From the NCBI RefSeq assembly GCF_030028105.1, contig NC_092382.1, positions 85,274,198-85,338,197 on the forward strand: a stretch of DNA of 64,000 bases, given 5' to 3'. The stretch is from Mobula birostris (lineage: Eukaryota). Of this stretch, positions 24,369-59,675 are shown piece after piece. The first letter of the stretch is position 1. Each line of letters opens with the position of its first letter. Under the pieces are notes generated by a model that made no database searches, was not told where the DNA came from, and saw only the letters and a list, made by a program, of their open reading frames with translations. A program made the translations under genes and the position numbers.

Positions 24369-26599
24369 TTAGATATTTTGTTTGTTAATTAGTTGAATAA
24401 TTGTCGTGAGCGGATATTTCACTGCGCTGACGAACTGCTCTCTGAACCTGGCCCGAGTTACCATTAATAATCGTGATTGTGCAGCAACTTAATATCATCA
24501 GCGTGTATCCAGTGTGTTGAAAAATGTAAGCCGAATCGTTCTAATAATTCTGATTCAGTCCGACAATGGTGTTATAAAGGAATTCGGCAACATCCACCGA
24601 CCGCAGGACGATGAAGCTTCCGGAGATGGTGAGAAGTAAGATCACAGACCTCCTCCTGCTCTCCATCTCCGGGTCACTGCGGTTCTCCGCCTTGCTTTGA
24701 CCCCTCAGCCCCTTACGGACGCGACTAGTCACCAAAATGTGCCTGACTGTCAGAGCGTTGAATAGTAGTATTAACACGAACGGGAATAATGGCGTTAGGA
24801 CGGTAGTAAGACAGTCATATCCCACCCACCCGGGATCCGTATAGTAGCCCGGAATTTCAATACAGTCCCGGGGTATATTGTCAACCACTTTCACAAGTGC
24901 AATATGAAGCAGTAAGACACATTATTGAAACAGAACACAACGCCGGTTGTTGTCAGAACCACAGACGCAGTTTTCCCGGTGTAATATTTGCTCTCCATTT
25001 CTGACAACATAAGGAGACAAACCGATCAAACATAAAGCTGAAAGTGAATCAAACAGAGCAGTCTGTGGCTGCCTCTCCCAGGGCAGCGATCACAGTGCAC
25101 ACGGGGGTGATGTCCAGGAAAGTCCCGGGGAAGTAATAATAACTGACCTGCCACAATATCACCGCAAACACGATGGTCAGTCGATCCGCCGCTGCCGTGG
25201 CCACCAGGTAGCGAGTGGTGCGGATGGAGAGGCCGCACTTTCCGGGACAGGATCACCATCGCCACTAAGTTCACTTGGGGGGGGGGGGGGACGGCAGAAT
25301 GAATGAATGAATTACTCTCTCACCTCTCTGTGGGTCTCTGTGCCAAGATCAGCTGTAAAGAGCGAACAATCAAACTTTGCGGGCGCTCATTACTGGTTTA
25401 AAACGTGTAAATCGGGGTTCGCAGACGCCTCAAAGGTGCACAAGCAGGGAGGAAGGTTACGGCACTCGATACTAAAAGGGGAGCGGGATTTGGGAAGGAG
25501 GCGTTGTGAACTGATCGCAAAGGACACCTTTCGGCCGATGTGCAAAGTTTGAATACCTCGGCAAGTTTCACTGCGATAGTGATTCCCGCGATCCCATCAC
25601 CTATCTTCTGTCTCTCTTCGCATGTCGCCCAGCCCCGCTGCCTCTGACTTTGTCCATTTTTATGTTCAAAGTTCGAAGCAGATTTACTTCCCCTGTTCGC
25701 AAGCATTCATCTCCTCCTCGACTTCCCGTTCGTCACCCGTTCACACGGGCTCAGTTGGGCTCGCTGCTTTTAAATTCTGCAGCTACCCTTGGCCGTGGTT
25801 CCTTCACATTATGTGATGGGATCGGATCTGGAAGTTCCCATTTACAATTTTTGTCTTGTACATTCTTCCTGACCTGCTCCAATTTACAAAAGTATTATTC
25901 CAAATGGATCGATGTTTATTGTTCCAGAGAGGAGTACCCCCTGTACTTTACACCGTCAGGCATCTAACGGACACCTGTGGGTTGGATAACCCCTTCTCCA
26001 CGGATAATATGACGTGGAAACAAACCCTTGTGAACCAAAACGTACACCGACACTTATCTGAAACTCACAATGGTCCGAGATCGAACACGCAAATTAATCT
26101 CATCGGGATTTCCCTTCAAACTCGCAGTATTTTTTTCAAACAATTCCCTTAAATTTGAAATTAAAGCATCTTGATCTATTAATGCAGAAAAAACCCACTA
26201 AGTAGCCCATAAGGGTGGCGAACGCGCTGTATTATCGGACTTCACTTTGACATCGTCTATGTATTGATAAATCAAAACTGCTTGCCATGGATCCACAATA
26301 TAATCCATCTCCCCCATCTTCCACTCTGCATCTGTTTCAATTCGTTCTTTTTTTTCTTTTCAGCCGAATCTACTGATTAAACTGCAAGGAAACTTCTGAC
26401 CGAACACAAGATTTTTGTCACAATATTCGCACTGCCCTCACTGATACACCGGCATGACAACGCTGTCGGTCACTGAACGAGTCCAAAACCCGCGCATATT
26501 GAACAGGAAATGTTAGTTCGCGTCTGTTCTTACCAGGGGCACACATGAAGCTAATGATCAAGTAATATATCTTTCTCACGCGGTAAATAGTTTCAGCAT
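24369..26599 (-). pseudogene. GPR139/142-like GPCR pseudogene (exon 1 26534-26599, exon 2 24369-25273)
   Basis: Closely paralogous to the intact gene at 38238-40615. Exon 1 is 66 nt versus 67 nt (frameshift). Exon 2 has a frameshift after ILS, further indels and a TAG at 24541-24543. Confidence 0.9.
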
Positions 26600-27159
26600 T
26601 CTGTGTGAGATTCAGCCTGTCTTCCAGCTGCCCGCGATCTCGCTGAAGAAATTCTGAGCTGATGAATCTCCACGGTCATTCATTTATACTCGCTCCAGCA
26701 CACTGAATATCCATTACTACACAAGGCTGACGTGTCTTCCAACAGCTGGGGTAAAAATAAACATGACTTCATTCAAATAAAATCCCAAATGTGATGAGGT
26801 ATGGAGAGCTTCACAGCTTCAAATTGAAGAATCTCACAGATGAAGAAATGACGATTCAAGAAGTCAGTAAATGTTGTTTTGAAACACTCTCAAGGTCAGC
26901 TCTCCGTTTCATGAATCTTATTGTTGATCTTGTCCATTCCCAGACTCCATAGGTTTTGTCATCATAGACCAATTCGATACTGTCACTGGGCTACTCTGTT
27001 TCACTCTGAAAGCTGACTCTGTTATAGATCTTTCAATAGAAATATAAGAAAAAGCATATGTTGTTTGTACATTCCTGTAATATAGTGAGCAGCCATAAGC
27101 TGATATCGTATCCAGGCTTACGAGGTAGGGAACGCACACAATCCGTTAATCACAATAAT

Positions 27160-27850
27160 CACAACACATACAAAAAACTGGAAGAACTCAACACGGCAGC
27201 GTCTTTGGAGATGAATAAAGAGTCGACGTTTCATGCCGAGACGTCTTCTTCAAATTAATTCACAATTCGACGAGCACCTTAGCAGCAACAACAAAAACAG
27301 AATTTCCCAGTGGCCAACTATCTCAACTCTAATCCCCATTCCCAGTCCGAAATGTTCGGCCTATTGTCCCCTTTTCTGCAACATGAGCCCACTCTCAGGT
27401 TGGAGGAGTAACCTGCAAACATATTCTCTTTATGGAGCCTCCAATCATATGACATGAACACAGATATCTGAAACTTCCGGTGTTTATCCTCTTCTTCATT
27501 TCACCACTCTGGCCTCGTACTCTTCTCCTCACCTACCAGTCACCTCTCTCCGGTCCTCTCCTACTTCCCTTTCTCCCATGCTCCACTCTCTCCTATGAGA
27601 TTCCCTCTTCTCTAGCTCTTCGCTTTTTCCCATTATCACGCCAGCCACATTTCGTCCCCCTATCTAATGCATCTGGCTTCACCTACTGCCTTCCAGCTTG
27701 TGCTCTCTCCAGCTCCTCGGAACTTCCTTATTTTGGCATCTTTCCCGTTTTACTCCATCCCGAAACTGGGTTGCAGCCCGAAAAGTCAACTCTTTATTCA
27801 TTTTGATGCATGCTACCTGACCTGGTGAATTCCTCCTGCATCTTAAATAC
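27160..27850 (+). mobile_element. Penelope-like element remnant (GIY-YIG C-terminus) with inverted terminal hammerhead-type repeats
   Basis: FDEHL...PVAxxxNSxPHSxS...RLEE...IFxLxSLQ...MN; pyrimidine-rich 3' region; degenerate cccgaaa.gtc.act at ~27778 and an antisense copy at ~27220-27250. Confidence 0.7.
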
Positions 27851-27854
27851 ACAC

Positions 27855-30800
27855 AGTGACATGGACTCCACAGCCGCTCGTGGCAACAAATTCCGTAGAT
27901 TTACCACGCGCTGACTAAAGTAATTTTTCCGCGCCTCAGTTCAAAATGGACGCCCTTCCATCCTGAAGTTGTTCCCTCTTCTCCTAGACTCCCTTACCAT
28001 GGGAAAACTTTGCCACATCTAATCTCTTCAGACCTTTTAAGATTTGGAATGTGTCGATGAGATCCTCTATCGTTCTCCTGAACTCCAGGGAATACAGCCC
28101 AAGAGCTGCCAGACTTTCTTCATACATTGTATTCGCCTGCTTCACAACCGACTCAACCTGGAGGTGAACCTTTAGTGTATCTTGCACAAGTACTCCCAAG
28201 TCTCTTTGCATCTCTGCATTTTGAATTCTTTCCCCACCTAAATAATAGTCTGCCCATTTATTTCTTCCACCAAAGTGCTTGACCATACATTTTCCAACAT
28301 TGTATTTCATTTGCCACTTCTTTGCCCATTCCCCTAAATTATTTAAGTCTCTCTGCAGTCTCTCTGTTTCCTCAACACTGCACGCACCTCTACCTATCTT
28401 TGTATCATCGGCAAATTTAGCCACAAATCCATTACTAACGTGGTCCAAATCATTGACATATATAGTAAAAAGTAACTGTCCCAACACCAACCCCTGTGGA
28501 ACACCACTGGTAACTGGCTGCCAGCCAGAATAGGATCCCTTTATTCCCACTCTCTGTTTTCTGTCAACCAGCCAATGCTCCACCCATGCTACTAATTCCC
28601 CTGTAATTCCATGAGCTCTTATCTTGCTAAGCAGCCTCATGTGCGGCACCTTGTCAAAGGTCTTGTGAAAATCCAAGTACACCACGTTTACTGCATCACC
28701 TTTTGCAATTTACTCAAAGAATTGCAGTTGGTTTGTCAGGCAGAATTTTTCTTTCTGGAAACCAAGCGGGCTTTGGCCTGTCTTGCCATGTGCCCCCAGG
28801 TACTACATAATCTCATCCTTAACAATTTCCCAACCACTGATGTCAGGCTAACAGGTCTATAGTTTCATTTTTGCTCCCTCCCACCATTCGTCAATAGCGG
28901 AGTAACATTTGCAATTTTCCAGTTATCCGATTTTTGAAAGATCATTGCTACTGCCTCCGAAATCTCTCCAGCTATTCCCATCGGAACCCAAGGGTGCATT
29001 CCATCAGACCCAGGAGATTTATCCAGCGTCAGACCATTATGCTCCCTGAGCACCTTCTCAGTCGTAATTTCCACTGCACACACTTCATTTCCATGATACT
29101 CTTGAATGCCCGATGTACTGCAGGTGGCTTCCACTGTGAAGCCTGATGCAAAATTTGCATTCACTTCCTCTGCCATCTCTGCGTCTCGCATTACAATATC
29201 TCCAGCGTCATTTTTTTTTTGTTTTGTGTTTTTCTGGCGTGTGCCTGCGTGTGTGCGAGTCTGTGCGTGCGCGTCTGTGCGTGTGCGTCTGCGTGTCCGT
29301 GCGTGCTTCCGTGATGATCTCTTTTTCATGGCTTTTACAAGGCGCTGAGCGAGAGAGAGACTGTGTGGTGCGCCACTCCTCACACAGACATTTTCGCAGT
29401 ATTTTCCCTTGATTTTACTAGGTCGAGCTGCGATCTCGACACTGAACCCAGCACGGATGGAAAGCGTACTCGGGGGCGGACCCCACTGGTTTTAAACCCG
29501 GGAACCTCCGCTCCCGGGTCCGGCGCCCATGTCATTGCGCCACCAGCGTCATTTTCTATTCGTCCTCTATCTACCCTGAATTCTCTTTTCCTCTTTACAT
29601 AATTAAAAAGGTTTTAGTATCTTCTTTGATATTAGTCGCGAGGTTACTTTCATAATTCATTTTTTCCTTCCTAACGACCTTCTTAGTTTCCTTCTGCAAG
29701 TTTTTAAAAGCTTCCCAATCGTCTATCTTCCACTAGATTTGGCTTCCTTGTATGCCCTCTCTTCTGCTTTAGCTTTATCTCTGAATTTACTTGTCAGCCA
29801 TGGTAGTGTCCTTCCTCCATTCGAAAATTTCTTCTTATTTCGAATATATCTGACTTGCACTTTCCGCATTTTTCGCAGAAACCCCAGCCATCGCTGCTCT
29901 GCTGTCCTTCCTGCTAGTGTCCCTTTCCAGTCAACCTCGGCCAGTTCCCCTCTTATGCCATTGAAATGTCATTTATTCTGCTGATATACCGACACATTGA
30001 CATTTAGTTTCTGCTTCTGAAATTTCAAAGTGAACTCGATCATATTGTGATCACTGTTTCCTAATGGTTCCTTAACCTTAAGCTCTTTTATCGCCTCCCG
30101 ATCATTGCACAACACCCAACCCAGCACAGACAAACCCGTATTGAGTTGAACAGCAAGCTGTTCTAAAAAGCCATCTCTTAGACATTCTTCAATTTCAGTC
30201 TCCTGATGTCCAGTAATGGCCTGGTTTTCCCAATCCACTTTCATGTTAGAATCCCCCACGATGATCATGATATTGCCCTCTTGACACACCTGTCCTATCT
30301 CCTGCTGTAATTTGTAATCCATACCCCGGCTGCTGTTTGGAGGCTTGTATGGAACTGCCATTAGGATTCTTTTAGCGTTGCCATTTCTTAACTCAACCCA
30401 TAGAGATTCCAAACTTTCTGCTTCTGTGTCATCCCTTTCTTATACACAGAGCCACACCACCCATTCTGCCTACTAACCTATCTTTCCGATACACCGAATA
30501 TCCTTGGACTTTCATCACCCAATGGTAGCCATTCTTTAGCCGAGTTTCAGAGATAGCCGCAACGACGTACTTGCCAATCTGTACCTGAATTTAAATATCG
30601 TCCATTTTATTCCTTATGCTGCGTGTATTCAACAGTAACACTTTCAGTCCAGTATTTGCTGCTTTCTGTTTCAACTGCGCCACGCCTCTATTGCCCTGTA
30701 ACTGGCTGTGATTATGCCTCATCTGCTGTCTTTCCTTTCTATCATTTCTGTTGCACGCTATCTGTGATTTATTTCTGTTTTCCCCTTCCTAAGGCCTATC

Positions 30801-31250: not shown

Positions 31251-31279
31251 CTCAGCTACTCATTAATATTCCTGATCAT

Positions 31280-34099: not shown

Positions 34100-34963
34100 A
34101 GCCGGGGAGAGCAGAACAACTTTTAACTGTTATCTGAATCTAGTCAGGGTCATTCCGTAGATAAATGTATTCGTGTAGCTGCTGAAATTCTGAATCACAG
34201 AACCTCAAAATTGGATCTGAAAAAGCCGAATAGATATTTCCAGGTCTGTATAGAGGCATCGCATGAGAATGAAGACCAGAGTGCTTGGCGCCCAACAGAG
34301 AAGGAAACTCGCCGACAGGCTGAAGAGCAGAATGATGGATTGTCTCCGAGTCTCCATCTCCGGATCTCGCTGTTTCCCGCAATTTCACTGTCCCTTCAGC
34401 TCCCTGCGGACTCTGCTCGCCGCCAGTATCTGTCCGACGGTCAGAGCATTGCGGGTCAAAATGAGGAAGAAAGGAAGTAGCGGATTCAACAGACGGTCCA
34501 CCCAATAAAACCCCTCAAACGATGGCGAGGAAGGAAGTACGGGTCTACTGAAACAGACCCAATTACCCCTCACGAAAAACGTTGCTTTTTCCATATGCAG
34601 GAAATAAAATGGGATTTCTGTTTTAAAAGAAACCGATACCAATTCCCAAAGTCGCAATCTTGAGGATGCAGTACTTTGTTTTAAACTTAGTGGAGCAAAT
34701 GACCACAAAGCGGTCGAAAGTGAAAGCGACAGTAAACCACACGGAGCAATCAACGACCACGTGACACATGACGTAGTGGACAAGGCAGAACGGAGCGTTG
34801 TCCAGGAAGCTGTGAAGTCCGTTTGCTTGACCCATCTGGTAGAACAGGACTTCGATAATCACCACCATTAGATCCGCCGCAGCCATCGCCAGCAGGTAGC
34901 GCGTGAAACATTTATTAATACCGTAGTTTCATCGGCAGAGAATGAGGATTGTCACAAGGTTAA
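34100..34963 (-). pseudogene. Divergent GPR139/142-like GPCR pseudogene (exon 2)
   Basis: Acceptor tgcAG then VNLVTILILCR* ; RYLLAMAAADL, DCSVWFTVAFTFDRF, LLNPLLPF, DPEMETRRQS, CWAP, TNTFIY; several stops and a frameshift. Exon 1 not found. Confidence 0.88.
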
Positions 34964-36387
34964 CTGCAGTGTGACAAAAAAGACCAAAAGCAAAAATTAA
35001 AAAAAAAAAATCAAAGCGCATTTTGTGCAGAAACACAACCATCTTTTGATCACTTGAATTAAATTCCATCGTTCATCTCTACTGGACTTTATCAGTGAAA
35101 GAAAACTTATACATGGGTTTATGCGGTTTCATTGAATACCTGACCGCAACATAAAGCGCTTCGCAGCAGCACATGCTCACATTAAACTCTTCACGTTCAC
35201 GGATGCAGCAGCTATGAGTAGAGTCCGAGAATGATAGAGCACAGAAACGGGTCCTTCTGCCCAATATCTTCATGCCGACCGACATGGCCGTCTGAGCTGG
35301 TCCCGTTTGTCCGCGTTTGGATCACATCTCTCTAAACCTTTCACATTAATGAAACTGTTAAAGTGCATTTCAAATATTGTCAATGACCTTATATCAACCA
35401 CTTCAATGCACAGACCAACTTCTGTGTGATAAAACGTCGCTCGGAATCCAACTACATTTCTGCCCTCTGAAGTTATGTCCACCCCCTCGAGAGACGTTAT
35501 GAGGGACGTTGGCTGCAAACACCTAAATCTCTCTGCGGCTGCACCTACTCGAGCATTGACCAGGTCCGATCTGATTTCCGCTGCGCTCCCTGAGAATTAT
35601 TCCCGTTCACCGTGAAACGGCAGTAGCCTCGCTCGGTGCTCCGTTTTTCTCTCCGTAACAGCGAAGCAACGACTTTGAAGGTCACTTGGCCGATAAGTAT
35701 TTACACTGGGGTGCGGGATTAATTACCGAAAGGGGTGTGGCTGTAAAGAGAATATCTTGACTAAAAAGTTGGGATGAGTTCACTAATTGGTGGGAGTTGG
35801 AGGTCGCGGGCTGCGGGTGCGAAGCGTCTGTTCTTGGGCTGAGTCTCTCATGAGCTCCAAACCAATTTTATTCCCCGCGCTGTCACGAGAGGGGTGAGTG
35901 AGATAAAGTGAAGGTGAGGTGTGTGAGAGACGGATTTCAGGAAGGGGGTGGGGTGAGAGGGTGGGTAGAGAATGAAGAAGAAGCATAGGGATGGGAGAGT
36001 AAAGGAACACGGAGGAACGAGGCTGAGAGAGAGTGTTGAGCTGAGGAGTTGGAGAAGGCTGAGAAGGTGATGAGTGGTGGGAATGAAGGGGCCGACGGGG
36101 AACGGTGAGCGCAAGGTGGAGAGAAGAGGATAAAGATAGTGAGGGAGATTCACACACAGACAGGGTGTTGGGTAATTCCATTCCTCTGCCCCACTCACAG
36201 TAAACCATCTGCAGATATAATTCGATCAGCGAAAACAGGGTACAACACTCGATGCGAGAATATGCGAATCCTGTAAGAAGTCCACACCACCAACTTGAAG
36301 GAATATACAATCCAGAACTATGAAGAAATTATAACTGCAGGAGAAAACATTAACCGATGAAAGAAAATGAATCTTCATGGAAGACAT

Positions 36388-37365: not shown

Positions 37366-37377
37366 ATAACAATCATG

Positions 37378-37643
37378 TGACACACATCAAAGTTGCTGGT
37401 GAACGCAGCAGGCCAGGCAGCATCTCTAGGAAGAGGTACAGTCGACGTTTCAGGCCGAGAGGGTCAGGGTCTCAGCCTGAAACGTCGACTGTACCGCTTC
37501 CTAGAGAAGTCCTGACGAAGGGTCTCGGCCTGAAACGTCGACTGCACCTCTTCCTAGAGATGCTGCCTGGCCTGCTGCGTTCACCAGCAAATTTGATGTG
37601 TCTTGCTTGAATTTCCAGCATCTGCAGAATTCCTGTTGCTTGC
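37378..37643 (+). mobile_element. Composite Penelope-derived element (inverted plus tandem units)
   Basis: 12-bp TSD ATAACAATCATG (37366-37377, 37644-37655); one antisense unit, one partial unit and one full sense unit. Confidence 0.88.
37508..37543 (+). ncRNA. Minimal type-I hammerhead ribozyme motif
   Basis: AGTC-CTGACGA-(A)GGGT CTCG GCCT-GAA-ACGT-C-GACT. Stem I is AGUC/GACU; core is CUGAnGA and GAA; palindromic ACGU replaces stem III; predicted cleavage after GUC (37539). Confidence 0.75.
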
Positions 37644-38237
37644 ATAACAATCATGCGATTGTCCTAGAGTGAATGCAAGAGCTTCAATAGGCAGATTATT
37701 CAGATGGGAAATTATTAGCAATCAGTAAGTGAGATGACATTCCTCCCATAGAGAACAGTAAACATCCCGGTGGTGGACGGTGGGTCATAGAAATGTGCTC
37801 ATTCATGAACAGAATGTATGCGTTCTGTAGTGTTAAGCATTTCTCCATAACAGGTTTATCTAATGTGAAAGACAAATGCAAGGTTTACTGAAAGTACGGC
37901 AGACTGCTGATTTCTTTTTCATTTCATGTCATTCTTATGCAAATATTAAGTAACGAATGATAGGCATCTCCGCCGATTTGGTCTCGAACCTCCTCAGATT
38001 CGGATCCGCTCTATCATAGTCGAAACGGCCGTGGCGGTGACGAGAGCGGAAATATGGTGAAAACAAGCAACAGTCAGGTTAATAATCGGTAGGAGGTGGG
38101 TGTCGCGTTTAGTGGGCACCGAACAGTCTGTTCCTGTGCTGTGACGTGTTTTTAATTCCCCCGCTGCTACGTTACCTGAGGACCGCCAGTTCTGTAGTGT
38201 CAAAAATAATAACACTGCGACCAGCTCTGAGAAGAAC

Positions 38238-39151
38238 TTAGCTATTTCGTTTTTTTTTAACCAGTTTAATAATTGATATGAGCGGATATTTCGCTGCGCT
38301 GATGAACTGCTCTCTGAACCTGGACTGAGTTATCGCATAAATAAACGTGTTTGTGCAGCAACTTAATATCATCAGCATGAATCCGGATTGATCAGCTATG
38401 TATTCCGAATCGTTGTAATCAATTATATCAAATCCAACAGTGACGTTATAAAGGAATTCGGCGACCATCACCGACCACAGGATGATGAAGCTGCCGGAGA
38501 TGGTGAGAAGTAAGATCACAGACCTCCTCCTGCTCTCCATCTCCGGGTCACTGCGGTTCTCCGCCTTGCTCTGACCCCTCAGCCCTTTACGGACGCGACT
38601 GGTCACTAAAACGTGTCTGACTGTCAGACCATTGAACAGTAGTATTAACACGTACGGGAGTAATGGAGTTAGAACGGCAGAAAACCATCTAAATCCCACC
38701 CATCCGGGGTCTGTATAGTAAGCAGACTTTATTATACAGTCCATGGGTACATCGTCAATCACTCTCACTGGATGAAATATAAAGAAGTAGGGCAAACTTC
38801 TAAAGCATTGGAGCACGCCGGTTGTTGTCAGAACCACAGCCGCAGTTTTCCCGGTGCAATATTTTGCTTTTAGCTTTTGGCAACAGATGGCGACAAACCG
38901 ATCAAAGGTAAAAGTGACAGTGAACCAGACAGAACACTCCATAGCTGCTAATCCCACGGCATTGATCGCACTGCATACGGATGTAATGTCCAAGAATGTT
39001 CCGGGGAAGATGTTATAACGGATCCGCCACAGTACGACCTGAAATATGATGGTTAGTAGATCCGCCGTTGCCATCACCACCAGGTAGCGAGTGGTACAGA
39101 CAGAGAGGCCGCACTTTCCCCTGGACAGGATCACAATTGCCACTAAATCCA
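38238..39151 (-). CDS. GPR139/GPR142-like class-A GPCR, exon 2 (intact; 326 aa with exon 1)
   Basis: Open frame covering the end of TM1 to helix 8: YLVVMATADL, C3.25, SVWFTVTFTFDRF, LLP...FN, TNTFIY, SRFREQF; acceptor (t)n gctgttcccccAG at 39152-39153. Confidence 0.92.
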
Positions 39152-40548: not shown

Positions 40549-40615
40549 CAGGAACACCAATAACGGCAATGATCATGTAATATATCTTTCTCACAATGTA
40601 GAATGTTTCAAGCAT
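40549..40615 (-). CDS. GPR139/GPR142-like GPCR, exon 1
   Basis: MLETFYIVRKIYYMIIAVIGVP + G|GTAAGA; the phase-1 junction gives GTG (Val) in frame with exon 2. Confidence 0.88.
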
Positions 40616-40689
40616 GCTGTGTGAGATTCAGCCGGTCTTTCGGCTGCCGCGATCTCTCTGAAGAAACTCTGAGCTGATGAGTCTCCACG

Positions 40690-40780
40690 GTTATTCGTTT
40701 ATACTCGCTCCAGCGCATTGAATATCCATTAGTACACACAGCTGACGTGTCTTCCCGCAGCTGGTTTAAAAATAAACATG
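40690..40780 (-). promoter_or_regulatory. Candidate core promoter of the intact GPCR
   Basis: TATAAA (40698-40703, minus), TAATGG (40726-40731, minus), TGACGTG near 40743 and TGTTTAT (40772-40778, minus); all retained in the paralog at ~26680-26765. Confidence 0.55.
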
Positions 40781-41164
40781 ATGTAATGACTGTAAATTCC
40801 CAGCTTGACACGAAATTGCAAAAACTCAAAGGCAAAGAAATGACAATTTGAGAACTCAATGAATGTTGTTGCGAAACACTCACGCTCACCTCTCGGTTTC
40901 ATGATCGTTACTGATTTCTTGTCCATTCCTCAGCTCCATGGACTTTGTCATCATAGACCGTTGTCATACTGTCATTGGGCCGCTCTGTTTCTTTCAAAAT
41001 TGTGTCGGTTGTAGATCTTGCAATAGAAGTATGTGTATATACGATTGTATATATATATAAATGTGGTTTGTACGCTACAGTAACCTACAGGGGAGCCTTA
41101 AACTAAGATAGCGTCCAGGCTGACGAAGATATTGAAGGCATGCAAAATGTTAATCAAATTAATT

Positions 41165-43480: not shown

Positions 43481-43492
43481 ATTTTGATATCA

Positions 43493-46400
43493 TAGTAACC
43501 CTCAGGTTCGGACGGCGGCGTTATACTAGGGGAAAACAGTCTCAAGCCTCGCCAAGCTTGTGAAATCTCGTTTGTGCGGATGCTGTGTGATTTCCCCCTG
43601 TACAAACCAGTACCATGAACTAACCGACAGTATAAAATATGCAATTAAAAGATTGAGCTTTATATTTCTTAATTTGACTATAGGGTTCGGAGAGAAAACA
43701 AACAGAAAAAAAGGCTCTTTTTAATTAAACAGTCTAATGTGCACGTTGGAGCTCACGATCTTCCAGTCAGTTCGTTCTCCATTGATTTCCCTCGGGCGTC
43801 GATTGCAAACCCCATTCCACGTCCACTCCGTCCTGCAGTCTACGAACTCTTCGGTCTGGCATATTTTCTTTCCATGTTCCGCCGAACAAAAGGCCGCGTA
43901 TCCTCGCTGTCGGGCACACAACAAAGAAAACACCCTCCTCATTGGACACCGCACGTTCCAAAGCACACTTATCTGTAGTCATCACCCAAACACTGCTGCT
44001 ACAGAGAAATCATTGCATTAGCAGTGAAACATTTCCTAGGGTGTTTCACTCTACCCCCACCAAAGTTATTCTTGTGCTCATGTCTTTGAGATAATTTACC
44101 GACACTTCCTGTAAAACAATAAAGTCCAACTCAGGTGTAAAAGGCAGTGATATAGCTCCCCAAAGCGGTAGGAGCCACACTCAGTTAAACATACCGGCCT
44201 ATCAGGTGGTGTCCTGATTCTGTGAGATGTCCGTACCCCTTCATCTGCCTCTTAATGCTTCGACACTACTGGAGATACCCTGATCTACAGGCGAGGCCTC
44301 CCCCGGCTTACCACGTGCCCACCTGCAACTCGGACCCCTCTATCCCTTGGCTAAGCTCCGCCTCATCTCCTGCAGGGTCCCGCTGCAACCCAGGCTGTCC
44401 AGATATATCGTACTCCCCCCGCCCCACCAGATGTCACCTGATTCAACGTGAGAAGGGTTGGGAGTCTGTTCCTCAATCAGTGGGGAGTTAGCGAAAGGCA
44501 GCGTACATCACACTGCCAAGTCCTTATCCTCCGAATCAGTATCTCACTCAGGGGTGGGGGCCGGTCTAATCTCTCCTGCTGTTGGCCACAGAATCGCCCG
44601 CGTCGCCGCAGCGTCCTATACACTTACGAGGTGTAAGCGCCAGGTCTGTCTCTGGGTCAGCCTGCATCTCTTGTCCCAGAGGCAGAAGGAGGTTATGATG
44701 GAGAATCTTTACAGGCGCAATCCCATCCTTTGGTTTCAGCCGGAAAACTGGTATGTTTGCCAACTGACTCCCCATCACATATGGCGTCCTCCTCTCTTTC
44801 TTCCCCAAAGGAGGGTAACCACACTGAAGCTAATTCAACGGGTGACTCACTTTTGCGTAGCCCCTAACGAACTTCCGATAGTAAACAGAGAACACAAGGA
44901 ACGACCACAATGCGCTCACAGTCCGAGGCCCTGGTCAGCTGTTCACAGTCTTTATTTTAGACGGAGCGATAGGCACTCCAATTCCACGAGACGATGTGCC
45001 CAACGTAGCTGGCAGACGTCTTGCAGAAATGGCACTTGTCCAAGGAAAGTTCCAACCCTTCAGCTTTCAGGTGGCCCAACACCTTCAGTAACCTCACTTC
45101 ACGTTCTTCTAAGGTGGACCCAAACACTATGAGGTCATCCAGATACACCAATACCTCAATCAAGTTCATATCCCCCACCATTTTCTCCATGACACGCTGG
45201 AAGTTTGCAGGGGCTCCCGATATGCCCTGGGGCACCCCTTCGAATTGGAAGAAACCCAGTGGACAGATAAATGCCGTCTTTTGTTTGTAAGCCTCACTCA
45301 TGGGGATCTGGTAATATCCACTTCTCAAGTCCAGTACACTGAACCACTTCGCACCACTCTGATAGGCCAGCGCGTCTTCGATCTTTGATACCGTATACTG
45401 GTCGGGGACGGTGCGCCTGTTCAGAGTCCTATAATGCACACACATCAGTATCTTCCCATTCTTCTTTCGGGCCACTAATATTTGAGACGCAAAGGGGCTT
45501 CGGGGCTCGGTGATTATTCCAGTTTCCGTCAACTTATACATATTGCTGCCGAACGTCATCCATGTCTGCAGGGGCCAGTCGCCGCGACCTTTCTCTGAAC
45601 GGGGTATCGTCGGTCACCCAAATAGTGTGACGCGTGGTTTGGAAGCATCCGCATCAAACTCGGCAGTGGAAATGATACCTTCCACCTTCAACATATTCTC
45701 TATCAACCTCCTCCTCCAACCTGCAGGTATCGGGGAGTCGGATTTCCCGAAGTTCAAACACACAGCAGTCAACTTTACCCCATTTTCCACTAGTTTCTCA
45801 CCGGCACGTATCACAGGGACACTAGACATTACCGTCAACTGGAAAAGATGCTCCAGGGGCAACCCCCGCTTGAAGGTGACCTCCCTCTTCGTAGTGTTCC
45901 TGACAATCACTACCATCCTGTTCGCCTCTACAACCGACTGCTTCTGCAGGCATTCTTGAATGCTCTTCGTTGTCTTCGGGAGCATCCAACAAGGGGTCCT
46001 CGTCCTCGGGCATTCCTGGAAATTTGGGGTTTCCCATCATTCTCTTTACTTCCCCGGCCTTAACAGGATTGGGGTTGGTCTGGGTGAACCACACAGTCCC
46101 TTGTCTAAACTCGTTATCCGGCACCAATGCAGCCACGCACTCCCGCAAACCAGCTCTAAACACCGGGTGAACGGACAATGTGGAATGCGGGAGGAGAGAG
46201 TGCTGCGCGCCGCGCGTGCGCAGCCCTCCGGTGAAAAATGATATCGTGTCCGTTAAATAGGGGCCGTGGATAATTTTGATTTGATAGAGACAGACGTGAA
46301 AGCACAGAGGAATATCTGGAGAAATTTTTGAAACTCTCGTTCGCTGCTGTCATTACTACGCGTTCGTGAATCTTCCGGAGGGAAGGCCTCAAAATCCCCA

Positions 46401-48980: not shown

Positions 48981-48984
48981 AAGC

Positions 48985-50372
48985 TCCTGAGGATTGGAGG
49001 GTGGCTAATGTAACCGCGCTTTTTAAAAAAAGGAGGGAGAAAGAAACCGGGGAATTATAGACCGGTAAGCCTGACATCGGTGGTGAGGAAAATGCTAGAG
49101 TCAGTTATCAAAGATGTGATAACAGCACATTTGGAAAGCGGTGAAATGATCGGACAAAGTCAGCATGGATTTGTGAAAGGAAAATCATGTCTGACGAATC
49201 TCGTAGAATTTTCTGAGGATGTAACTAGTAGAGTGGATAGGGGAGAACCAGTGGATGTGGTATATTTGGATTTTCAAAAAGCTTTTGACAAGGTCCCACA
49301 CAGGAGATTAGTGTGCAAACTTAAAGCACGCGGTATTGGGGGTAAGGTATTGTTGTGGATAGAGAATTGGTTGGCAGACAGGAAGCAAAGAGTGGGAATA
49401 AACGGGACATTTCAGAATGGCAGGCAGTGACTAGTGGGGTACCGCAAGGCTCATTGCTGGGACCCCAGTTGTTTACAATATATATTAATGTCTTGGTTGA
49501 GGGAATTAAATGCAGCATCTCCAAGTTTGCGGATGACACGAAGCGCGGCGGCAGTGTTAGCTGTGAGAAGGATGCTAAGAGGATGCAGGATGACTTGGAT
49601 AGGTTACGTGAGTGGGCAAATTCATGGCAGATGCAATTTAATGTGGATAAATGTGAGGTGATCCACTTTGGTGGCAAGAACAGGAAAGCCGATTATTATC
49701 TGAATGGTGGCCGATTAGGAAAAGGGGAGGTACAACGAGACCTGGGTGTCAATATACACTAGTCATTGAAACTGGGCATGCAAGTACCGGAGGCTGTGAA
49801 AAAGGCGAATGGTATGCTGGCATTTATAGCGAGAGGATTCGAGTACAGGAGCAGGGAGGTACTACTGCAGTTGTACAAGGCCTTGGTGAGACCACACCTG
49901 GAGGATTGTGTGCAGTTTTGGTCCCCTAATCTGAGGAAAGACATTCTTGCGATAAAGGGAGTACAAAGAAGTTTCACCAGATTGATTCCTGGGATGACAG
50001 GACTTTCATATGATTGAAACGTATAAAATTCTAAAGGGATTGGACAGGCTAGATGCAGGAAGATTGTTCCCGATGTTGGGGAAGTCCAGAACGAGGAGTC
50101 ACAGTTTGAGGATGCAGGAGAAGCCTTTTAGGACCGAGAGTGGTGAATCTGTGGAATTCTCTGCCACAGGAAACATTTGAGGCCAGTTCATTGGCTATAT
50201 TTAAGAGGGAGTTAGATATGGCCCTTGTGGCTAAAGGGATCGGGAGTATGGAGGGAAGGCAGGTACAGGGTTCTGAGTTGAATGAGCAGCCATGATCATA
50301 CTGAATGGCGGTGCAGGCTCGAAGGTCCGAATGGCCTACTCCTGCACCTATTTTCTATGTTTCTATGTTTTT
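48985..50372 (+). mobile_element. CR1 LINE, 5'-truncated RT to 3' tail
   Basis: ORFs 49080-49430, 49355-49762 (FADDTK) and 49766-50017; tail tttctatgtttctatg. Confidence 0.93.
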
Positions 50373-50379
50373 ATGTTTC

Positions 50380-52544: not shown

Positions 52545-55128
52545 ATATTAGTGGGGTTGTATTATAGACCACCCAATAATCAGCGAGAATTGGAGGAGTA
52601 AATCTGCAGAGAGATAGCAGGCAACTGCAGGAAACATAAAGTTGTGGTGTTAGGGGATTTTAATTTTCCACATATTGATTGGGACTCCCATGCTGTTAGG
52701 GGTCTAGATGGTTTAGAGTTTGTAAAATGTGTTCAGGAAAGTTTCCTAAATCAATATATACAGGGACCAACTAGAGGGGATGCAATATTGGATCTCCTAT
52801 TAGGAAACGAGTTAGGACAAGTGACGGAAGTGTGTGTAGGGAAGTACTTTGGTTCCAGTGATCATAACTCCATTAGTTTCAACTTGATCGTGGACAAGGA
52901 TAGATCTGGTCCTAGGGTTGAGGTTCTAAACTGGAAGAAGGCCAAATTTGAAGAAATGAGAAAGGATCTAAAAAGCGTGGATTGGGACAGGTTGTTCTCT
53001 GGCAAAGATATGATTGGTAGGTGGGAAACCTTCAAAGGAGAATTTTTGAGAGTGCAGAGTTTGTATGTTCCTGTCAGGATTAAAGGCAAAGTGAATAGCG
53101 ATAAGGAACCTTGGTTCTCAAGGGATATTGCAACTCTGATAAAGAAGAAGAGGGAGTTGTCTGACATGTATAGGAAACAGGGAGTAAATAAGGTGCTTGA
53201 GGATTATAAAAAGTGCAAGAACATACTTAAGAAGGAAATCAGGAGGGCTAAAAGAAGACATGAGGTTGCCTTAGCAGTCAAAGTGAAGGGTAATCCAAAG
53301 AGATTTTACAGGTATATTAAGAGTAAAAGGATTGTAAGAGATAAAATTGGTCCTCTTGAAGATCAGGGTGGTCGGCTATGTGCGGAACCAAAAGAAATGG
53401 GGGAGATCTTAAATGTTTTATTTTTTGCGTCTGTATTTACTAAGGAAACTGGCATGAAATCTATGGAATTAAGGGAAACAAGTAGTGAGATCTGGAAACT
53501 GTACAAATTGAAAAGGAGGAGTTGCTTGCTGACTTGAGGAAAATTAAAGTGGATAAATCCCCGGGACCTGACAGGGTGTTCCCTCGGACCTTGAAGGAGA
53601 CTACTGTTGAAATTGCAGGGGCCCTGGCAGAAATATTTAAAATGTCGCTGTCTACAGGTGAGGTGCCGGAGAATTGGAGAGTGGCTCATGTTGTTCTGTT
53701 GTTTAAAAAAGGATCGAAAAGTAATCCGGGAAATTATAGGCCGGTGAGTGTAACGTCGGTAGTAGGTAAGTTATTGGAGGGAGTACTAAGAGACAGAATC
53801 CACAAGCCTTTGAATAGACAGGGACTTATTAGGGAGAGTCAACATGACTTTGTGCGTGGTAGGTCATGTTTGACAAATCTATTGGAGTTTTTCGAGGTGG
53901 TTACCAGGAAAATGGATGAAGGAAAGGCATTGGATGTTGTCTACGTGGACTTCAGTAAGGCCTTTGACAAGGTCCCGCATGGGAGGTTAGTTAGGAAAAT
54001 TCAGTCGCTAGGTATATATGGAGAGGTGGTAAATTGGATTAGACATTGGCTCAAGGGAAGAAACCAAAGAGTGGTAGTAGAGAATTGCTTCTCCGAATGA
54101 AGGCCTGTGACTAGTGGTGTGCCACAGGGATCAGTGCTGGGTCCATTGTTGTTTGTCATCTATATCAATGATCTGGATGATAATGTGGTAAATTGGATCA
54201 GCAAATTTGCTGATGATACAAAGATTGGAGGTGTAGTAGACAGTGAGGAAGGTTTTCAGAGCCTGCAGAGGGATTTGGACCAGCTGGAAATAATGGGCTG
54301 AAAATTGGCAGATGGAGTTTAATTCAGACAAGTGTGAGGTATTGCATGTTGGCAGGACAAACCAAGTTAGAAAATACAGGGTTAATGGTAAGGCACTGAG
54401 GAGTGCAGTGGAACAGAGGGATCAGGGAATACAGATACAAAATTCCCTAAAAGTGGCGTCACAGGTAGATAGGGTCGTAAAGACAGCTTTTAGTACATTG
54501 ACCTTTATTAGTCAAAGTGTTGAGTATAAGAGCTGGAATGTTATGATGAGATTGTATAAGGCATTGGTGAGGTCGAATTTTGAGTATTGTGTTCAGTTTT
54601 GGTCACCAAATTACAGGAAGGATATAAATAAGGTTGAAAGAGTGCAGAGAAGGTTTACAGGGATGTTGCCAGGACTTGAGAAACTCAGTTACAGAGAGAG
54701 GTTGAATAGGGTTAGGACTTTATTCCCTGGAGCGTAGAAGAATGAGGGGAGATTTGATAGTGGTATATAAAATTATGATGGGTATAGATAGAGTGAATGC
54801 AAGCAGGCTTTTTCCACTGAGGCAAGGGGAGAAAAATACCAGAGGACATGGGTTAAGGGTGAGGGGGTAAAAGTTTGAAGGGAACATTGGGGGGGGGGCT
54901 TCTTTACACAGAGAGTGGTGGGAGTATGGAATGAGCTGCTAGATGAGGTGGTAAATGCGGGTTCTTTTTTTTAACATTTAAGAATAAATTGGACAGATGC
55001 ATGGATGGGAGGTGTATGGAGGGATATGGTCCGTCTGCAGGTCAGTGGGATTAGGCAGAAAATGGTTCGGCACAGCCAAGAAGGGCCAACAGGCCTGTTT
55101 CTGTGCTGTCGTTTCTATGGTTTCTATG
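52545..55128 (+). mobile_element. CR1 LINE, most of ORF2, relatively well preserved
   Basis: YYRPPN; ORFs 52644-53537 (GDFNFP, SSDHN), 53522-54100, 54107-54301 (FADDTK) and 54312-54737; few disruptions; tail tttctatggtttctatg. Confidence 0.95.
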
Positions 55129-55129
55129 A

Positions 55130-56100: not shown

Positions 56101-56479
56101 AATATCCTCTAGTAGCTGAGTTCCAGAAAACATATTGTCAATGGGATGCTGTGGACCGAAATGAGATGATCCTCTTAGGTTTATGTTTCAGGCAATCGAC
56201 GGTGATGAGGATGAAGGAGCAGTTGGTCCCTCAGTGAGTTGGGCAAACACATCCCGTTTGTTCCCGGAGGATAAGGATAGTTCATATCTTTGCACTCGCC
56301 CGAGCCAATGCGGAGACAATGGAAGAGAGAAACAGATGAGAGAACGTGTTTATTATGTGGTCCTCTGGAAATAAAGTGGCGGATAATTGATCTGATACAA
56401 ATGGATTTTTATCAGGCCTTATTGTTATCCATGGTAGGACCATTCATAACGTCAGAAAGCTTGGTACTCAGGGAAAGTT

Positions 56480-56830
56480 GGCTGCTGGATTCAGAACTGA
56501 CGTTCACAGAAGGCAGAGGATAGTTGTGGATGAAGTGTTTTCTCCCTGGATGTCGGTGAACAGTGGAGTCCTGCAGAGATCTGTTCTGAGACCCCCGGCT
56601 TTTTGTGTTTTTGTGAATGATTTGGATAAGGAGGTGGAAGGGTGGTTTATTGTATTTGCAATGATGTGGAGGTTGGTGAAATTATGGATAGTGTAGAAGG
56701 TTGTCACAGATTACAACAGGACGGTGACAGGACGCAGAGCAGCGCTGAGAAGTTACAGATGGAGTTCAACCCGGAACGTTACGGAGTGATTCGCTTTGGA
56801 AGGGTGAACTTGAAGGCAGAGGTGATACTT
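56480..56830 (+). mobile_element. CR1 RT fragment
   Basis: SGVLQRSVL.P...FVNDLD...LQQD...QMEFNPE. Confidence 0.8.
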
Positions 56831-57972: not shown

Positions 57973-58041
57973 ATGGGCTATCCGGTGACTTATTACATGG
58001 CAGCCATTTTCTATCCCCACTTTTAGCGGTTGGTGTCCCCG
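57973..58041 (+). CDS. GPR139/142-like GPCR exon 1 (frameshifted as assembled)
   Basis: MGYPVTYYMAAIFYP.../LAVGVP + G|GTAAGA. It is 69 nt instead of 3n+1, so the ATG frame meets TAG at 58024-58026. Confidence 0.7.
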
Positions 58042-58776
58042 GTAAGAACTGGAGCTGGTTACTTTATTTACCGTGCCGTCGTCTTGCTGTTACTTTGCTG
58101 CGGTATCCGCACTGTTACTGAGCACAGATGCTACCGTCGGCTGAAACGTGTTTCCGGAATGGAGGATACAGGCATCTAACGGTTTTAGTTCCATTTCCCA
58201 CACTTCTATCGCAATGTTTTCTTCTCTTGTCAATTAAGTTGGTGCCGATATTGTCGTTGTTTCGTAATTTCACCTCGCTCGGCTTTCTGAAGTGATGCCT
58301 GTCTCTACTTTTCTAGGTTCCAGTTTCTATCAGTGCAGACAGTTCGACCTGATAACAACGTGGCAGCTTATTTAAATGATTGCCCAGTCTATTTTCCACA
58401 CACAGGTCTGTTCTTCTGTATGTTAGTGAATCAGAACGTGTCCTTTATATCTCCTTGACTCCACTTTGTCACCGCAACAATCCCTTCAGCTATTTCACCT
58501 CTAATAATGGACATGGTGTTTTTTTACAGGAGTGAGCGACTGCTCGCCGGTACGTGAGTCGTGGAACTCGGATGCCGCGGTCTAAACTGTGGGAATGTCG
58601 CCAATCCACGGACACTCACATCCGTCATTGTCCTCCAGCCGGAGCGCAGCGACGGAGACCGCACACACTGGGTTTTCGCTTTCCACTTCCAAACAGACCA
58701 TATCCTCCATAGCATCGGTAGAATCGGGGCATTCAGGCAGCTGACCATATTTCGATTTTGTTTCCAAATTTTGTAG

Positions 58777-59675
58777 TTAACTTAACGGCGATTGTGATCC
58801 TTTCTCGGGGAAAATGCGGACTCTCCAAATGCATCACCCGTTACCTGGTTGGAATGGCAACAGCGGATCTGATGGTGGTTATCGTTGTTGCTTTAGTGGA
58901 ACAGACCAACAATGTCTACATTTATTCCAGATCCCTGCTCATCACTCCTGTATGCGCTCTGACACTTGTATTTCGGACTGTAACGACGGACTGTTCTGTT
59001 TGGTTTACAGTCAGTTTTACTTTCGATCGCTTCATCGCAATATGTTGTCGAAAGCTGCGGGAGCGATACTGCACTGAGAGAACAGCAACGGTGGTTATCG
59101 TGACCGTGGTTATAGTGAGCTGCGGGAGATGTGCCCCGTTTTACTTCGTCATTGAACCTTACGTCATCATTGACAACACGCCGTGGCGGTGCACCGGCAG
59201 ATACGAATACGCTACTTCACCCGTGTGGAGAGGATACGAATTACTGAACAGTATTTTAAAACTATTGCTACCAATCGGCTTAATCCTGGTGTTTAACGGG
59301 TCAACCGTAAGAATTATCGTTGTGGCAAATAGAGTCCGCAGAAGGCTTCGGCACAGCAACGAAAATCAGAAAGATGCCGAGGAGGTAAACCGCAGAAAAT
59401 CGATGATTTTGCTGTTTTCTATTTCAGCTAATTTCATATTATTTTGGATGCCCTATGTAGCCCATTCCCTGAAATGGCAACTGCAAAACTACTTTTACCA
59501 GGACAGATATTTGAGTTCTCCGGTATACATCCTGCAGGAATTCGGGTTAATTTTGCAAGTACTCAGCATGTGCACCAATACTTGTATCTATACACTGACA
59601 CAGAGGAAATTCAGAGAAGAGCTGAGGAATGGAATGATGTATGTGTTTACATTAAATAGCCATGTGTGTAGGTAA
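58777..59675 (+). CDS. GPR139/GPR142-like class-A GPCR, exon 2 (open frame)
   Basis: Acceptor ttttgtAG (58775-58776); NLTAIVILSRGKCGLS, MATADL, DCSVWFTVSFTFDRF, FWMP, TNTCIY, KFREEL; no stops. Confidence 0.9.

Follow-up and report, generated by a model that had tools for sequence, protein, structure and literature searches.

Four receptor genes in a Mobula birostris array belong to a class A orphan GPCR family that probably forms a sensor repertoire in cartilaginous fishes

The stretch of Mobula birostris DNA analyzed here (the window; 64 kb) carries four class A GPCR genes, paralogues with two exons each, between 24.4 and 59.7 kb (Table 1). Comparison of two open reading frames with the window by tblastn yielded exactly four related loci, with D, C, and B on the reverse strand and A on the forward strand; their cross-match E values range from 1e-38 to 1e-92, so their relatedness is not due to chance. 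An earlier note on this DNA had described four related 7TM genes within 35 kb in both orientations, one intact (B), one nearly intact (A, with one frameshift in exon 1), and two dead (C and D), and this description is confirmed. The two-exon plan that it proposed is likewise found in A, B, and D, where exon 1 is followed by a phase-1 intron within TM1, placed after a Pro codon and continued by x-N/D, and C has its acceptor at the same phase-1 position as the other copies. The tiny first exon contains the 5′ untranslated region and about 22 codons, which account for a near-absent extracellular N terminus and most of TM1, and the rest of the protein is encoded by exon 2. By arithmetic, N/D 1.50 is residue 24 to 25 of the protein, in agreement with the short N terminus noted before.

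Table 1. Features of the receptor array, in window coordinates. The exon 1 (N-terminus) profile consists of 24 canonical N termini.
Feature	Position	Strand	Description
Gene D exon 2, dead pseudogene	24378..25273	(-)	tblastn pieces in four frames
Gene D exon 1	26534..26599	(-)	66 nt; aligned to B exon 1
Predicted promoter-like block upstream of D	26600..26790	(-)	Conserved with B; TATAAA at -89
Gene C exon 2, dead pseudogene	34121..34963	(-)	tblastn pieces in two frames
Possible gene C exon 1 relic, weak	36228..36254	(-)	N-terminus profile 8.3 bits, E 0.29
Gene B exon 2, intact	38238..39151	(-)	TM1 end to C terminus; stop TAA at 38238
Gene B exon 1	40549..40615	(-)	ATG, 22 codons + 1 base; phase-1 donor G|GTAAGA
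Predicted promoter-like block of B	40616..40805	(-)	TATAAA at -88, two CAGCTG boxes, TAATGG site
Gene A exon 1	57973..58041	(+)	69 nt; profile match 23.6 bits, E 4.6e-6
Gene A exon 2, open	58777..59675	(+)	Pfam 7tm_1 87.6 bits

Gene B is predicted to be the sole copy in the window that is fit to work. Its exon 2 is an open frame of 304 codons that, joined to exon 1 across an intron of 1397 nt, gives by arithmetic a protein of 326 aa, as reported earlier; the AlphaFold model (pLDDT 87.9, pTM 0.83) has 7 TM helices and helix 8. B departs from its own subfamily at 9 of 74 columns, and the other nine members do so at 1 to 11. Exon 1 of gene A measures 69 nt instead of the 70 that would keep the reading frame. 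The lost base lies at or beside a CCCC run at 58015, downstream of residues F-Y-P, and the resulting frameshift precedes the donor (G|GTAAGA). A 735-nt intron follows. Its Mobula birostris orthologue (P0001) has an intact N terminus and is 86% identical to A exon 2. The adjacent T-P conserved in TM5 of the family is replaced by K-L in A, which differs from the family at 6 of its 95 conserved columns (median of 3 in other members). Gene A appears to have been disabled recently, or else mis-assembled by one base, and C and D died long ago; of the four copies, two and probably three are disabled.

The translation of D exon 2 shows at least four frameshifts and two stops, and exon 1 of D has a 1-nt deletion directly after the ATG but keeps the donor G|GTAAGA. 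The DNA of B and D is 83% identical over 200 nt upstream, 68% in the intron, and 80.5% in exon 2, and the duplication covers the whole gene. Their divergence (K2P) amounts to 0.42 in the intron and 0.23 in exon 2; since exon 2 of D diverged about half as fast as the intron, D evolved under selection before it died, and since the intron value points to an old duplication, turnover in the window has not been fast. Gene C has at least one frameshift and at least three premature stops, one of which falls inside the ICL1 motif. The window probably holds part of a tandem array, with slow turnover, of a class A (rhodopsin-type) orphan GPCR family.

A protein search for further members supported the large multicopy family that had been predicted, as at least 1,415 proteins reach E ≤ 1e-5. 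Representatives number 636, 165, and 111 at E ≤ 1e-3, 1e-10, and 1e-30, respectively, the last figure referring to clusters at 50% identity. Among the best 120 of the 1,415, 114 are named entries, all from 18 elasmobranch species, and the distinct proteins include 20 from Heterodontus, 19 from Narcine, and 17 from Mobula hypostoma. One member comes from Callorhinchus (P0150), and the named family members among the matches listed all come from sharks, rays, or chimaeras. Our literature search found no paper on this cartilaginous-fish receptor family.

Membership in class A is indicated by Pfam 7tm_1 scores of 87.6 (A) and 73.2 (B) bits against a cutoff of 30.5 and by at least 500 class A matches in Foldseek. 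For residue positions, we take our own assignment of Ballesteros-Weinstein numbers and of generic pocket positions, anchored on conserved residues, with TM1 and TM4 left out. Of the class A hallmark residues, the family shows D2.50 (70/71), D3.49 (70/71), R3.50 (71/71), W6.48 (67/71), N7.49 (70/71), and Y7.53 (69/71), and it is variant at 3.51 (F in 54/71) and 7.50 (T in 66/71, P in 1/71), with P6.50 in only 21/71. Across 84 family members, the C3.25-ECL2 Cys pair is invariant, and the intracellular motifs singled out before (ILSRGKCGLS, SVWFTVxFTFDRF, SRVR..LR, RRxS, and TNTxIY) are all found, with conservation that is complete or no lower than 90% in their columns.

The genes had been called GPR139/142-like. 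Among solved structures, human GPR139 is indeed the best match, both of gene A alone (37.5 bits, E 1.7e-8) and of the family profile (63.5 bits; the next best, CCR5, lies 15.6 lower at 47.9 bits), but the likeness is remote and the name applies only loosely. The nearest relatives outside cartilaginous fishes likewise score just 53 to 60 bits against GPR139, and in the structural comparison (Foldseek) GPR139 ranks only 24th among the class A receptors. True GPR139 orthologues are 70 to 96% identical across vertebrates from zebrafish (70%) to mouse in the comparison given in PMC7318219; orthology to GPR139 was rejected, as a match of 37.5 bits is remote where at least 70% identity is expected. 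GPR139 resembles the family in its class A fold, two-exon gene (PMC7318219), and TM2 (xYLxAxAxADxxV) and TM3-end (DRY/F-I-A-I/V-C) motifs, whereas it is single copy and the family has many copies with pseudogenes. The family is not GPR139, and probably not GPR142 either.

Its closest counterpart is instead a single-copy orphan gene kept in amphibians and sturgeon (clade Y), likewise named "probable GPR139," of which the family is the many-copy version. A careful tree covered the family, clade Y, and a second clade with members throughout the jawed vertebrates; it joined the family and clade Y with support of 100/99, placed the second clade, sharks included, outside at 99/93, and gave moderate support (90/65) to a single origin of the cartilaginous-fish family. 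Clade Y consists of sturgeon and 20 clusters from amphibians, each listed species contributing one. It is like the family in identity to B (about 32%, 128 bits), in length (about 340 aa), and in lacking Pro at 7.50, which is absent from the family, the amphibian gene (M/V/I), and GPR139 alike, and it differs in having one gene per species and DRY, S1.50, and N2.50 in place of DRF, N, and D. The clade Y gene appears to belong to a broader group that has GPR139 as its nearest relative of solved structure, and it may correspond to GPR210A or GPR210B, orphan clades adjacent to GPR139/142 that were described by Ensembl identifiers only in a study that did not cover cartilaginous fish (PMC6504862). 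Within the family, the lineages of A and of B each contain sharks and rays, indicating that the subfamilies are older than the shark/ray split; orthologues of gene A follow the species tree from rays to sharks at 68 to 88% identity.

The outer halves of the helices and ECL2 had been described as the more variable parts, and both column entropy and paralogue pairs agree. Mean column entropy in the family is 2.15 at 35 generic pocket sites and 0.88 in inner TM halves (p = 2e-8), and in 122 within-species paralogue pairs, 21.5% of pocket sites and 27.5% of ECL2 sites differ, compared with 9.2% in the inner half. The pocket is more variable than the inner half but not significantly more so than other outer-half sites, where entropy is 1.89 (p = 0.14) and 20.1% of sites differ between paralogues; relaxed constraint on the whole outer half fits these values as well as directed diversification of the pocket does. 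The amphibian orthologues show the opposite pattern, with a mean entropy of 0.08 in the pocket and 0.52 at outer non-pocket sites (p = 2e-5). Outer-half variability is general to GPCR paralogues with different ligands and is not specific to chemoreceptors.

The activation of GPR139 and GPR142 by Trp and Phe, stated in the earlier note, agrees with the account in PMC7318219; the proposed amino acid sensor is not supported. Residues F3.33, H5.43, W6.48, and N7.38, with R6.51, mediate agonist and Trp/Phe action in GPR139 (PMC5430874), and the family keeps only the generic W6.48. The corresponding residues are L, A, W, F, and M in B and T, S, W, L, and Y in A; family-wide, F3.33 occurs in 10/71 and K6.51 in 2/71, and neither H5.43 nor an Asn at the position of GPR139 N271 is among the eight commonest residues. 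As the Trp/Phe-binding residues have been lost, an amino acid ligand cannot be inferred. Clade Y, by contrast, keeps F3.33, W6.48, K6.51, and the Asn matching N271 in 20 of 20.

Because these four residues are invariant in the single-copy relatives, the pocket of the ancestor would have been fixed and of the GPR139 type. Once duplicated, the copies in cartilaginous fishes may have changed most at those pocket positions and in ECL2, while ICL1, ICL3, the region around DRF, and the face of TM7 and helix 8 would have been held constant across copies. A variable pocket and ECL2 over a constant cytoplasmic face suggest different ligands with shared signaling, and hence a sensor repertoire: the copies would most likely differ in the small ligand or short peptide that they accept within the helix bundle, and all would feed one G protein/arrestin interface. 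We assign a probability of about 0.7 to the reading that the array is part of such a sensor repertoire, drawn from a class A orphan GPCR family that has expanded massively in cartilaginous fishes.

Our leading guess for its putative role is chemosensation, external or internal. The chemical sense of sharks and rays is famously keen. As far as the data in PMC10116579 and PMC6368271 extend, the shark and ray nose expresses essentially V2Rs, the catshark nose is without OR expression, and OR, TAAR, and V1R genes number only a handful, so the earlier remark on few canonical OR genes applies to TAAR and V1R as well. It is possible, although we hold this tentatively, that the family offsets these small sets as an external repertoire, with one or a few genes per olfactory, taste, or solitary chemosensory cell. 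The size and clustering of the family, its pseudogenes, its variable ligand side, and the very short N terminus, as in small-ligand receptors, speak for it; tandem arrays, birth and death, a variable ligand side over a constant signaling side, and lineage-specific expansion are likewise typical of OR, TAAR, V1R/ORA, T2R, and FPR/MRGPR-type families. Clustering, turnover, and ligand-side variability, the hallmarks of a chemosensory repertoire named in the earlier note, are supported, with turnover that is not fast in the window. The family does not belong to OR, TAAR, V1R/ORA, T2R, or the FPR/MRGPR-type expansions by sequence (in Pfam only the generic 7tm_1 matched, with Srx subthreshold), its coding region, unlike that of OR, TAAR, V1R, and T2R genes, is split by the TM1 intron, and its old subfamilies include some shark-ray orthologues; with the A lineage tracking the species tree and an old B/D duplicate, it turns over more slowly than typical odorant receptors do. 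In the catshark, microvillous-neuron markers overlap completely with the pan-neuronal marker in the data given in PMC10116579, which would leave no ciliated OR-type neurons. O/E-type sites gave 0 matches in 64 kb against 4.1 expected, a very weak point. The more specific claim of an undescribed class A chemoreceptor family, with dozens of members per species, a GPR139-related amino-acid-type receptor at its origin, and expression in olfactory, gustatory, or solitary chemosensory cells, is doubtful.

An unlikely alternative places the receptors inside the body, as neuroendocrine or nutrient receptors among which the expression domains or ligands of the ancestor were split; GPR139 (brain) and GPR142 (pancreas, gut), which sense Trp and Phe there (PMC7318219), would be the precedent, GPR139 is the nearest solved relative, and the single-copy sister gene keeps its pocket type. 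Dozens of copies per species (at least 20, 19, and 17 in Heterodontus, Narcine, and Mobula hypostoma), frequent pseudogenes, and lost ancestral pocket residues are, however, unusual for hormone or transmitter receptors. Sensors of microbial or host peptides and metabolites in leukocytes, skin, or gut, like formyl-peptide, chemokine, or MRGPR-type receptors, seem quite improbable: chemokine receptors follow GPR139 in the profile search, and FPR2, C3aR, and chemokine receptors are among the top Foldseek matches, but this similarity is generic to class A. Least credible, and very improbable, is a mostly decaying family whose outer halves vary through lost constraint rather than new ligand specificities. 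The disabled copies in the window and a pocket no more variable than other outer-half sites would fit decay; against it, hundreds of open reading frames are kept in sharks, rays, and a chimaera, the inner halves are strongly conserved (entropy 0.88 versus 2.06, p = 1e-13), gene A orthologues track the species tree, and D was selected before its death. Of 10 listed sequencing runs, 0 were recorded as RNA (word shares 0.05 to 0.09), and the contigs obtained were short conserved pieces of relatives' paralogues.

With the sensor repertoire as the preferred reading, a class A family with dozens of members per species would be an obvious candidate for the missing sensory or surveillance capacity of cartilaginous fishes, and a pocket diversified from a fixed GPR139-type ancestor would strengthen that candidacy. 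If the chemoreceptor reading were true, it would help explain chemical discrimination with almost no OR, TAAR, or V1R genes. The gene is single in amphibians and sturgeon, with a pocket that does not vary, whereas in cartilaginous fishes the copies are many and their pockets variable; whatever the tissue, this one-to-many contrast offers a natural experiment in how a dedicated receptor becomes a repertoire. The automatic NCBI name "probable GPR139" is misleading, as hundreds of database entries so named are not GPR139.

Exactly four related loci, A, B, C, and D, were detected in the window, which contains no N, when two long 7TM reading frames were used as tblastn queries. The open frames of A and B score 87.6 and 73.2 bits, respectively, with the Pfam 7tm_1 model (cut-off, 30.5). 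In B, exon 1 starts with the ATG at 40615 and comprises 22 codons plus one base up to the donor G/GTAAGA; a 1397-nt intron leads to the acceptor (...CCCCCAG, at 39152/39151), and exon 2 ends with TAA at 38238, which by arithmetic gives 326 codons in total. A has an intron of 735 nt, and its exon 1 measures 69 nt against the 70 nt required by the frame; behind F-Y-P, where a CCCC run lies at 58015, the frame shifts and runs into a stop, while the rest of the canonical N terminus is readable in another frame as far as the donor. D is a duplicate of the entire B gene (promoter, exon 1, intron, and exon 2), with a 1-nt deletion following the ATG, at least four frameshifts, and two stops. C has the same acceptor as the other copies, at least one frameshift, and at least three premature stops, and its exon 1 is at best a weak candidate (E 0.29). 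In all four genes (C by its acceptor), the intron is in phase 1 and interrupts the codon that follows the proline of TM1, one residue ahead of N/D 1.50, and the extracellular N terminus of the receptors is a handful of residues. The earlier note had described four related 7TM loci, three with this two-exon plan and the fourth with the same acceptor position, and every detail checked (tblastn loci, splice sites, phase-1 TM1 intron, short N terminus, and lesions) was correct; the exact gene models for this cluster are new here. Exon 2 alone was the input of every search, fold, and tree, and the exons were never joined.

Positions of the receptor loci and neighboring features in the window
Feature	Position	Strand	Basis or remark
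D, exon 2	24378-25273	-	tblastn against the window
D, exon 1	26599-26534	-	
D, promoter-like block	26600-26790	-	conserved with B
C	34121-34963	-	tblastn against the window
B, exon 2	38238-39151	-	tblastn against the window
B, promoter-like block	40616-40805	-	conserved with D
A, exon 1	57973-58041	+	
A, exon 2	58777-59675	+	tblastn against the window
LINE-type endonuclease/reverse transcriptase fragments and one LTR-type reverse transcriptase (RVT_1, 109 bits)	27984-30412, 44957-45559	-	
Same set	49080-49762, 52644-54737, 6811-8213	+	

With A as the query, 1,415 proteins among 2,269 candidates matched at E ≤ 1e-5. Among the best 120 of these 1,415, 114 are named. All 114 bear the name "probable/putative G-protein coupled receptor 139" and are spread over 18 elasmobranch species, including Heterodontus francisci (20 proteins), Narcine bancroftii (19), Mobula hypostoma (17), M. 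birostris (12), Rhinoraja longicauda (11), and Heptranchias perlo (10). The closest match to A among those listed is an M. birostris protein (86%); no protein among the best 120 is identical to those of the window, which means that proteins of this genome itself are missing from that list. When B was run exhaustively with HMMER against 1.84 billion representatives, 636, 165, and 111 matched at E ≤ 1e-3, 1e-10, and 1e-30, respectively. Cluster look-ups placed the strong matches in sharks and rays, with a single protein from a chimaera (P0150 of Callorhinchus milii). The canonical family product has 322 aa; 24 of the 120 listed match its N terminus exactly, and in many others the predicted N terminus is spurious, indicating that the tiny first exon is often missed by annotation. 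The ESM Atlas returned only clusters autonamed "probable GPR139," plus invertebrate 7tm_1 clusters. Automatic "probable GPR139" predictions are the sole form in which the family's genes are on record; no paper linking GPR139-named genes to a cartilaginous-fish expansion was found in a literature search that left most subscription journals outside.

Of the solved structures, human GPR139 matches best, though remotely: A alone scores 37.5 bits, and a profile built from 84 members scores 63.5 bits on GPR139 versus 47.9 on CCR5. In the structure search, GPR139 ranked only 24th among class A receptors, the matches being generic for this class and not discriminating. True GPR139 shows 96, 92, and 70% identity between human and mouse, chicken, and zebrafish, respectively (PMC7318219), and compared with these values the remote match here indicates that the window genes are not GPR139 orthologues. 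No bona fide GPR139/142 appeared among the best 150 of the 636 representatives found with B, and the database protein P0225 reaches only 53 bits on human GPR139. Distant kinship of the family with GPR139 is nevertheless supported by two shared features: like the family and its single-copy amphibian relative, GPR139 lacks Pro 7.50 (T in 66 of 71 family rows; M, V, or I in the amphibian gene), and GPR139 is likewise a two-exon gene (PMC7318219).

The first full-length matches below the family, at ~30% identity, are salamander, coelacanth, teleost, and amphioxus proteins, all autonamed GPR139. The salamander protein as the query retrieved 20 amphibian clusters, one per species, plus sturgeon at 46%, and the coelacanth protein retrieved a second gene across sharks, sturgeon, bichir, bowfin, teleosts, amphibians, and reptiles. 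This coelacanth-type gene (P0320, P0323, P0327, and others) is also autonamed "probable GPR139" and its catshark and coelacanth versions are 66% identical; in the annotation of two species it figures as a TMEM183A isoform, a label suggesting read-through annotation with a neighboring gene. The gene is likewise not GPR139; P0257, one of its members, scores no more than 60 bits on the human receptor. In the careful tree (IQ-TREE; 61 rows, 304 columns), rooted on the ghrelin receptor-like protein P0258, which serves as the outgroup because it is closer to the ghrelin and neuromedin receptors, the amphibian/sturgeon clade (support, 100/100) is sister to the cartilaginous-fish family, and the joint clade has a support of 100/99; the family by itself has 90/65. 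The coelacanth-type clade, including three shark orthologues, is supported at 100/99, and the amphioxus proteins fall outside both clades. A quick tree of 89 rows agrees. New here are the one-to-many relation of the family to the single-copy amphibian/sturgeon gene and a second conserved clade, of which sharks have retained members as well. A 2019 Ensembl survey describes extra orphan clades beside GPR139/142 in coelacanth, gar, and fishes as GPR210A/B and covers no cartilaginous fish (PMC6504862).

Within the family, the A lineage tracks the species tree (window, Mobula, Rhinoraja, Narcine, and then sharks), and the B subfamily likewise contains rays and sharks; the subfamilies are therefore older than the shark-ray split, and local duplications such as B/D were added later. 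P0150 of the chimaera falls within the family, where it groups with a Heterodontus protein (98/82).

The pattern of variation was analyzed with numbering anchored on B (D2.50 = 31, C3.25 = 60, R3.50 = 85, P5.50 = 166, W6.48 = 226, 6.50 = 228, and N7.49 = 268) and with 35 positions in TM2, 3, 5, 6, and 7, which we take to be the generic pocket, TM1 and TM4 being excluded. Over 71 family rows, the mean column entropy was 2.15 in the pocket, 1.89 at non-pocket positions of the outer half, and 0.88 in the inner halves (pocket versus inner, p = 2e-8; outer versus inner, p = 1e-13; pocket versus outer non-pocket, p = 0.14). In the 20 amphibian orthologues, the corresponding values were 0.08, 0.52, and 0.36 (pocket versus outer non-pocket, p = 2e-5); the pocket is the most conserved part of the amphibian gene, whereas the order is reversed in the family, and this reversal between single-copy gene and family is new here. 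In 122 within-species paralogue pairs of 75 to 98% identity, 21.5% of pocket, 20.1% of other outer-half, 27.5% of ECL2, and 9.2% of inner-half sites differ. The ligand-side variability described in the earlier note thus holds for the outer half and ECL2 relative to the inner half; the excess of the pocket over other outer-half sites is not significant. The pattern supports ligand diversification and is no proof of positive selection, because the pocket does not lie significantly above the rest of the outer half.

Mutagenesis of GPR139 with agonists and Trp/Phe identified F3.33, H5.43, W6.48, and N7.38, with R6.51, as residues that matter (PMC5430874). At these positions, all 20 of the amphibian orthologues have F (3.33), T (5.43), W (6.48), N (7.38), and K (6.51), and the family has many different residues at each except W6.48; at 3.33, 5.43, 6.48, 7.38, and 6.51, the residues are L, A, W, F, and M in B and T, S, W, L, and Y in A. 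The GPR139 ligand residues thus appear to have been lost in the family, a further observation new here, and with them goes the basis for aromatic amino acids as ligands. Since the amphibian residues are invariant and those of the family varied, the pocket of the ancestral gene was very probably of the GPR139 type, and the cartilaginous-fish copies would have given it up in many directions.

On these sequence patterns, we regard the family as a likely repertoire of ligand-diversified receptors with one common signaling interface (probability, about 0.7). B deviates at 9 of 74 columns at which its nine nearest subfamily members agree, inside the range of 1 to 11 seen in the others, so B looks functional. 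Neutral decay is very improbable as an account of the family. A decaying B frame, considered because of 24 deviations in 95 columns against the A-type subfamily, was rejected on the comparison with its own subfamily, the former being unfair because its members had been found with A as the query. A itself deviates at 6 of 95 conserved columns (median of the others, 3), and two adjacent family-conserved residues in TM5, T-P, are replaced by K-L; its M. birostris orthologue P0001, 86% identical, is intact and has the canonical N terminus. A is probably a young pseudogene, although the missing base may conceivably be a one-base assembly error in the homopolymer. The K2P distances between B and D are 0.42 in the intron, 0.44 downstream, and 0.23 in exon 2; the two are old duplicates, and the lower value in exon 2 than in the intron indicates that D was long under purifying selection before it decayed.

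Ten sequencing runs listed as sharing words with B exon 2 had word shares of 0.05 to 0.09, and none of the 10 is recorded as RNA. Contigs on 37900-40700 from four runs (X1, 34; X2, 17; X3, 71; X6, 6) are short, show 90 to 99% likeness, and cover conserved coding segments; they come from other organisms' paralogues and are uninformative on tissue or level. From X6, a run whose RNA status is a guess, comes a 207-letter contig (depth, 2.3) that lies on 40554-40595 and joins exon-1-like letters directly to P-V-N-L-T-A-I-V-I-L. The contig is what a spliced transcript from the family would look like, and as such it would support the predicted exon junction; alternatively, it may be an intronless retrocopy. 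Other contigs continue into intron-like sequence and are thus genomic or unspliced. As for the putative role of such a repertoire, external chemosensation is possible but doubtful. The motive for this idea is that cartilaginous fishes have very low numbers of OR, TAAR, and V1R genes, and in the catshark nose ORs are not expressed and V2Rs dominate, as stated in two studies (PMC10116579, PMC6368271); caution comes from the microvillous-neuron markers of the catshark nose, which in the first of these overlap the pan-neuronal marker completely (PMC10116579). Internal neuro-endocrine or nutrient sensing is somewhat less probable still, and immune or barrier sensing is unlikely.

Shared regulatory logic among the genes cannot be claimed. 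Between B and D, the ~190 nt 5' of the ATG are more alike (83% identity over 200 nt) than the intron, and both blocks carry TATAAA at -88/-89, CAGCTG boxes, a CACGTC site, and a TAATGG site. The region upstream of A does not align with these blocks (~43% identity); GACGTG, TAATTG, and CAGCTG are found there within 125 nt of the ATG. For an O/E-type motif, 4.1 matches would be expected in the window and 0 occur. At Rfam gathering thresholds, no family was found anywhere in the 64-kb window, including at 37378-37643, just downstream of B, where a retrozyme-like element with a hammerhead ribozyme was proposed. The DNA between the receptor genes is filled with fragments of LINE endonuclease/reverse transcriptase and LTR-type reverse transcriptase, which may have aided rearrangement of the array. 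Upstream of the receptor cluster, a 548-aa open frame (15851-17497, + strand) consists almost wholly of tandem C2H2 zinc fingers, with 16 zf-C2H2 stretches by Pfam, and is probably an exon of a poly-ZNF gene.
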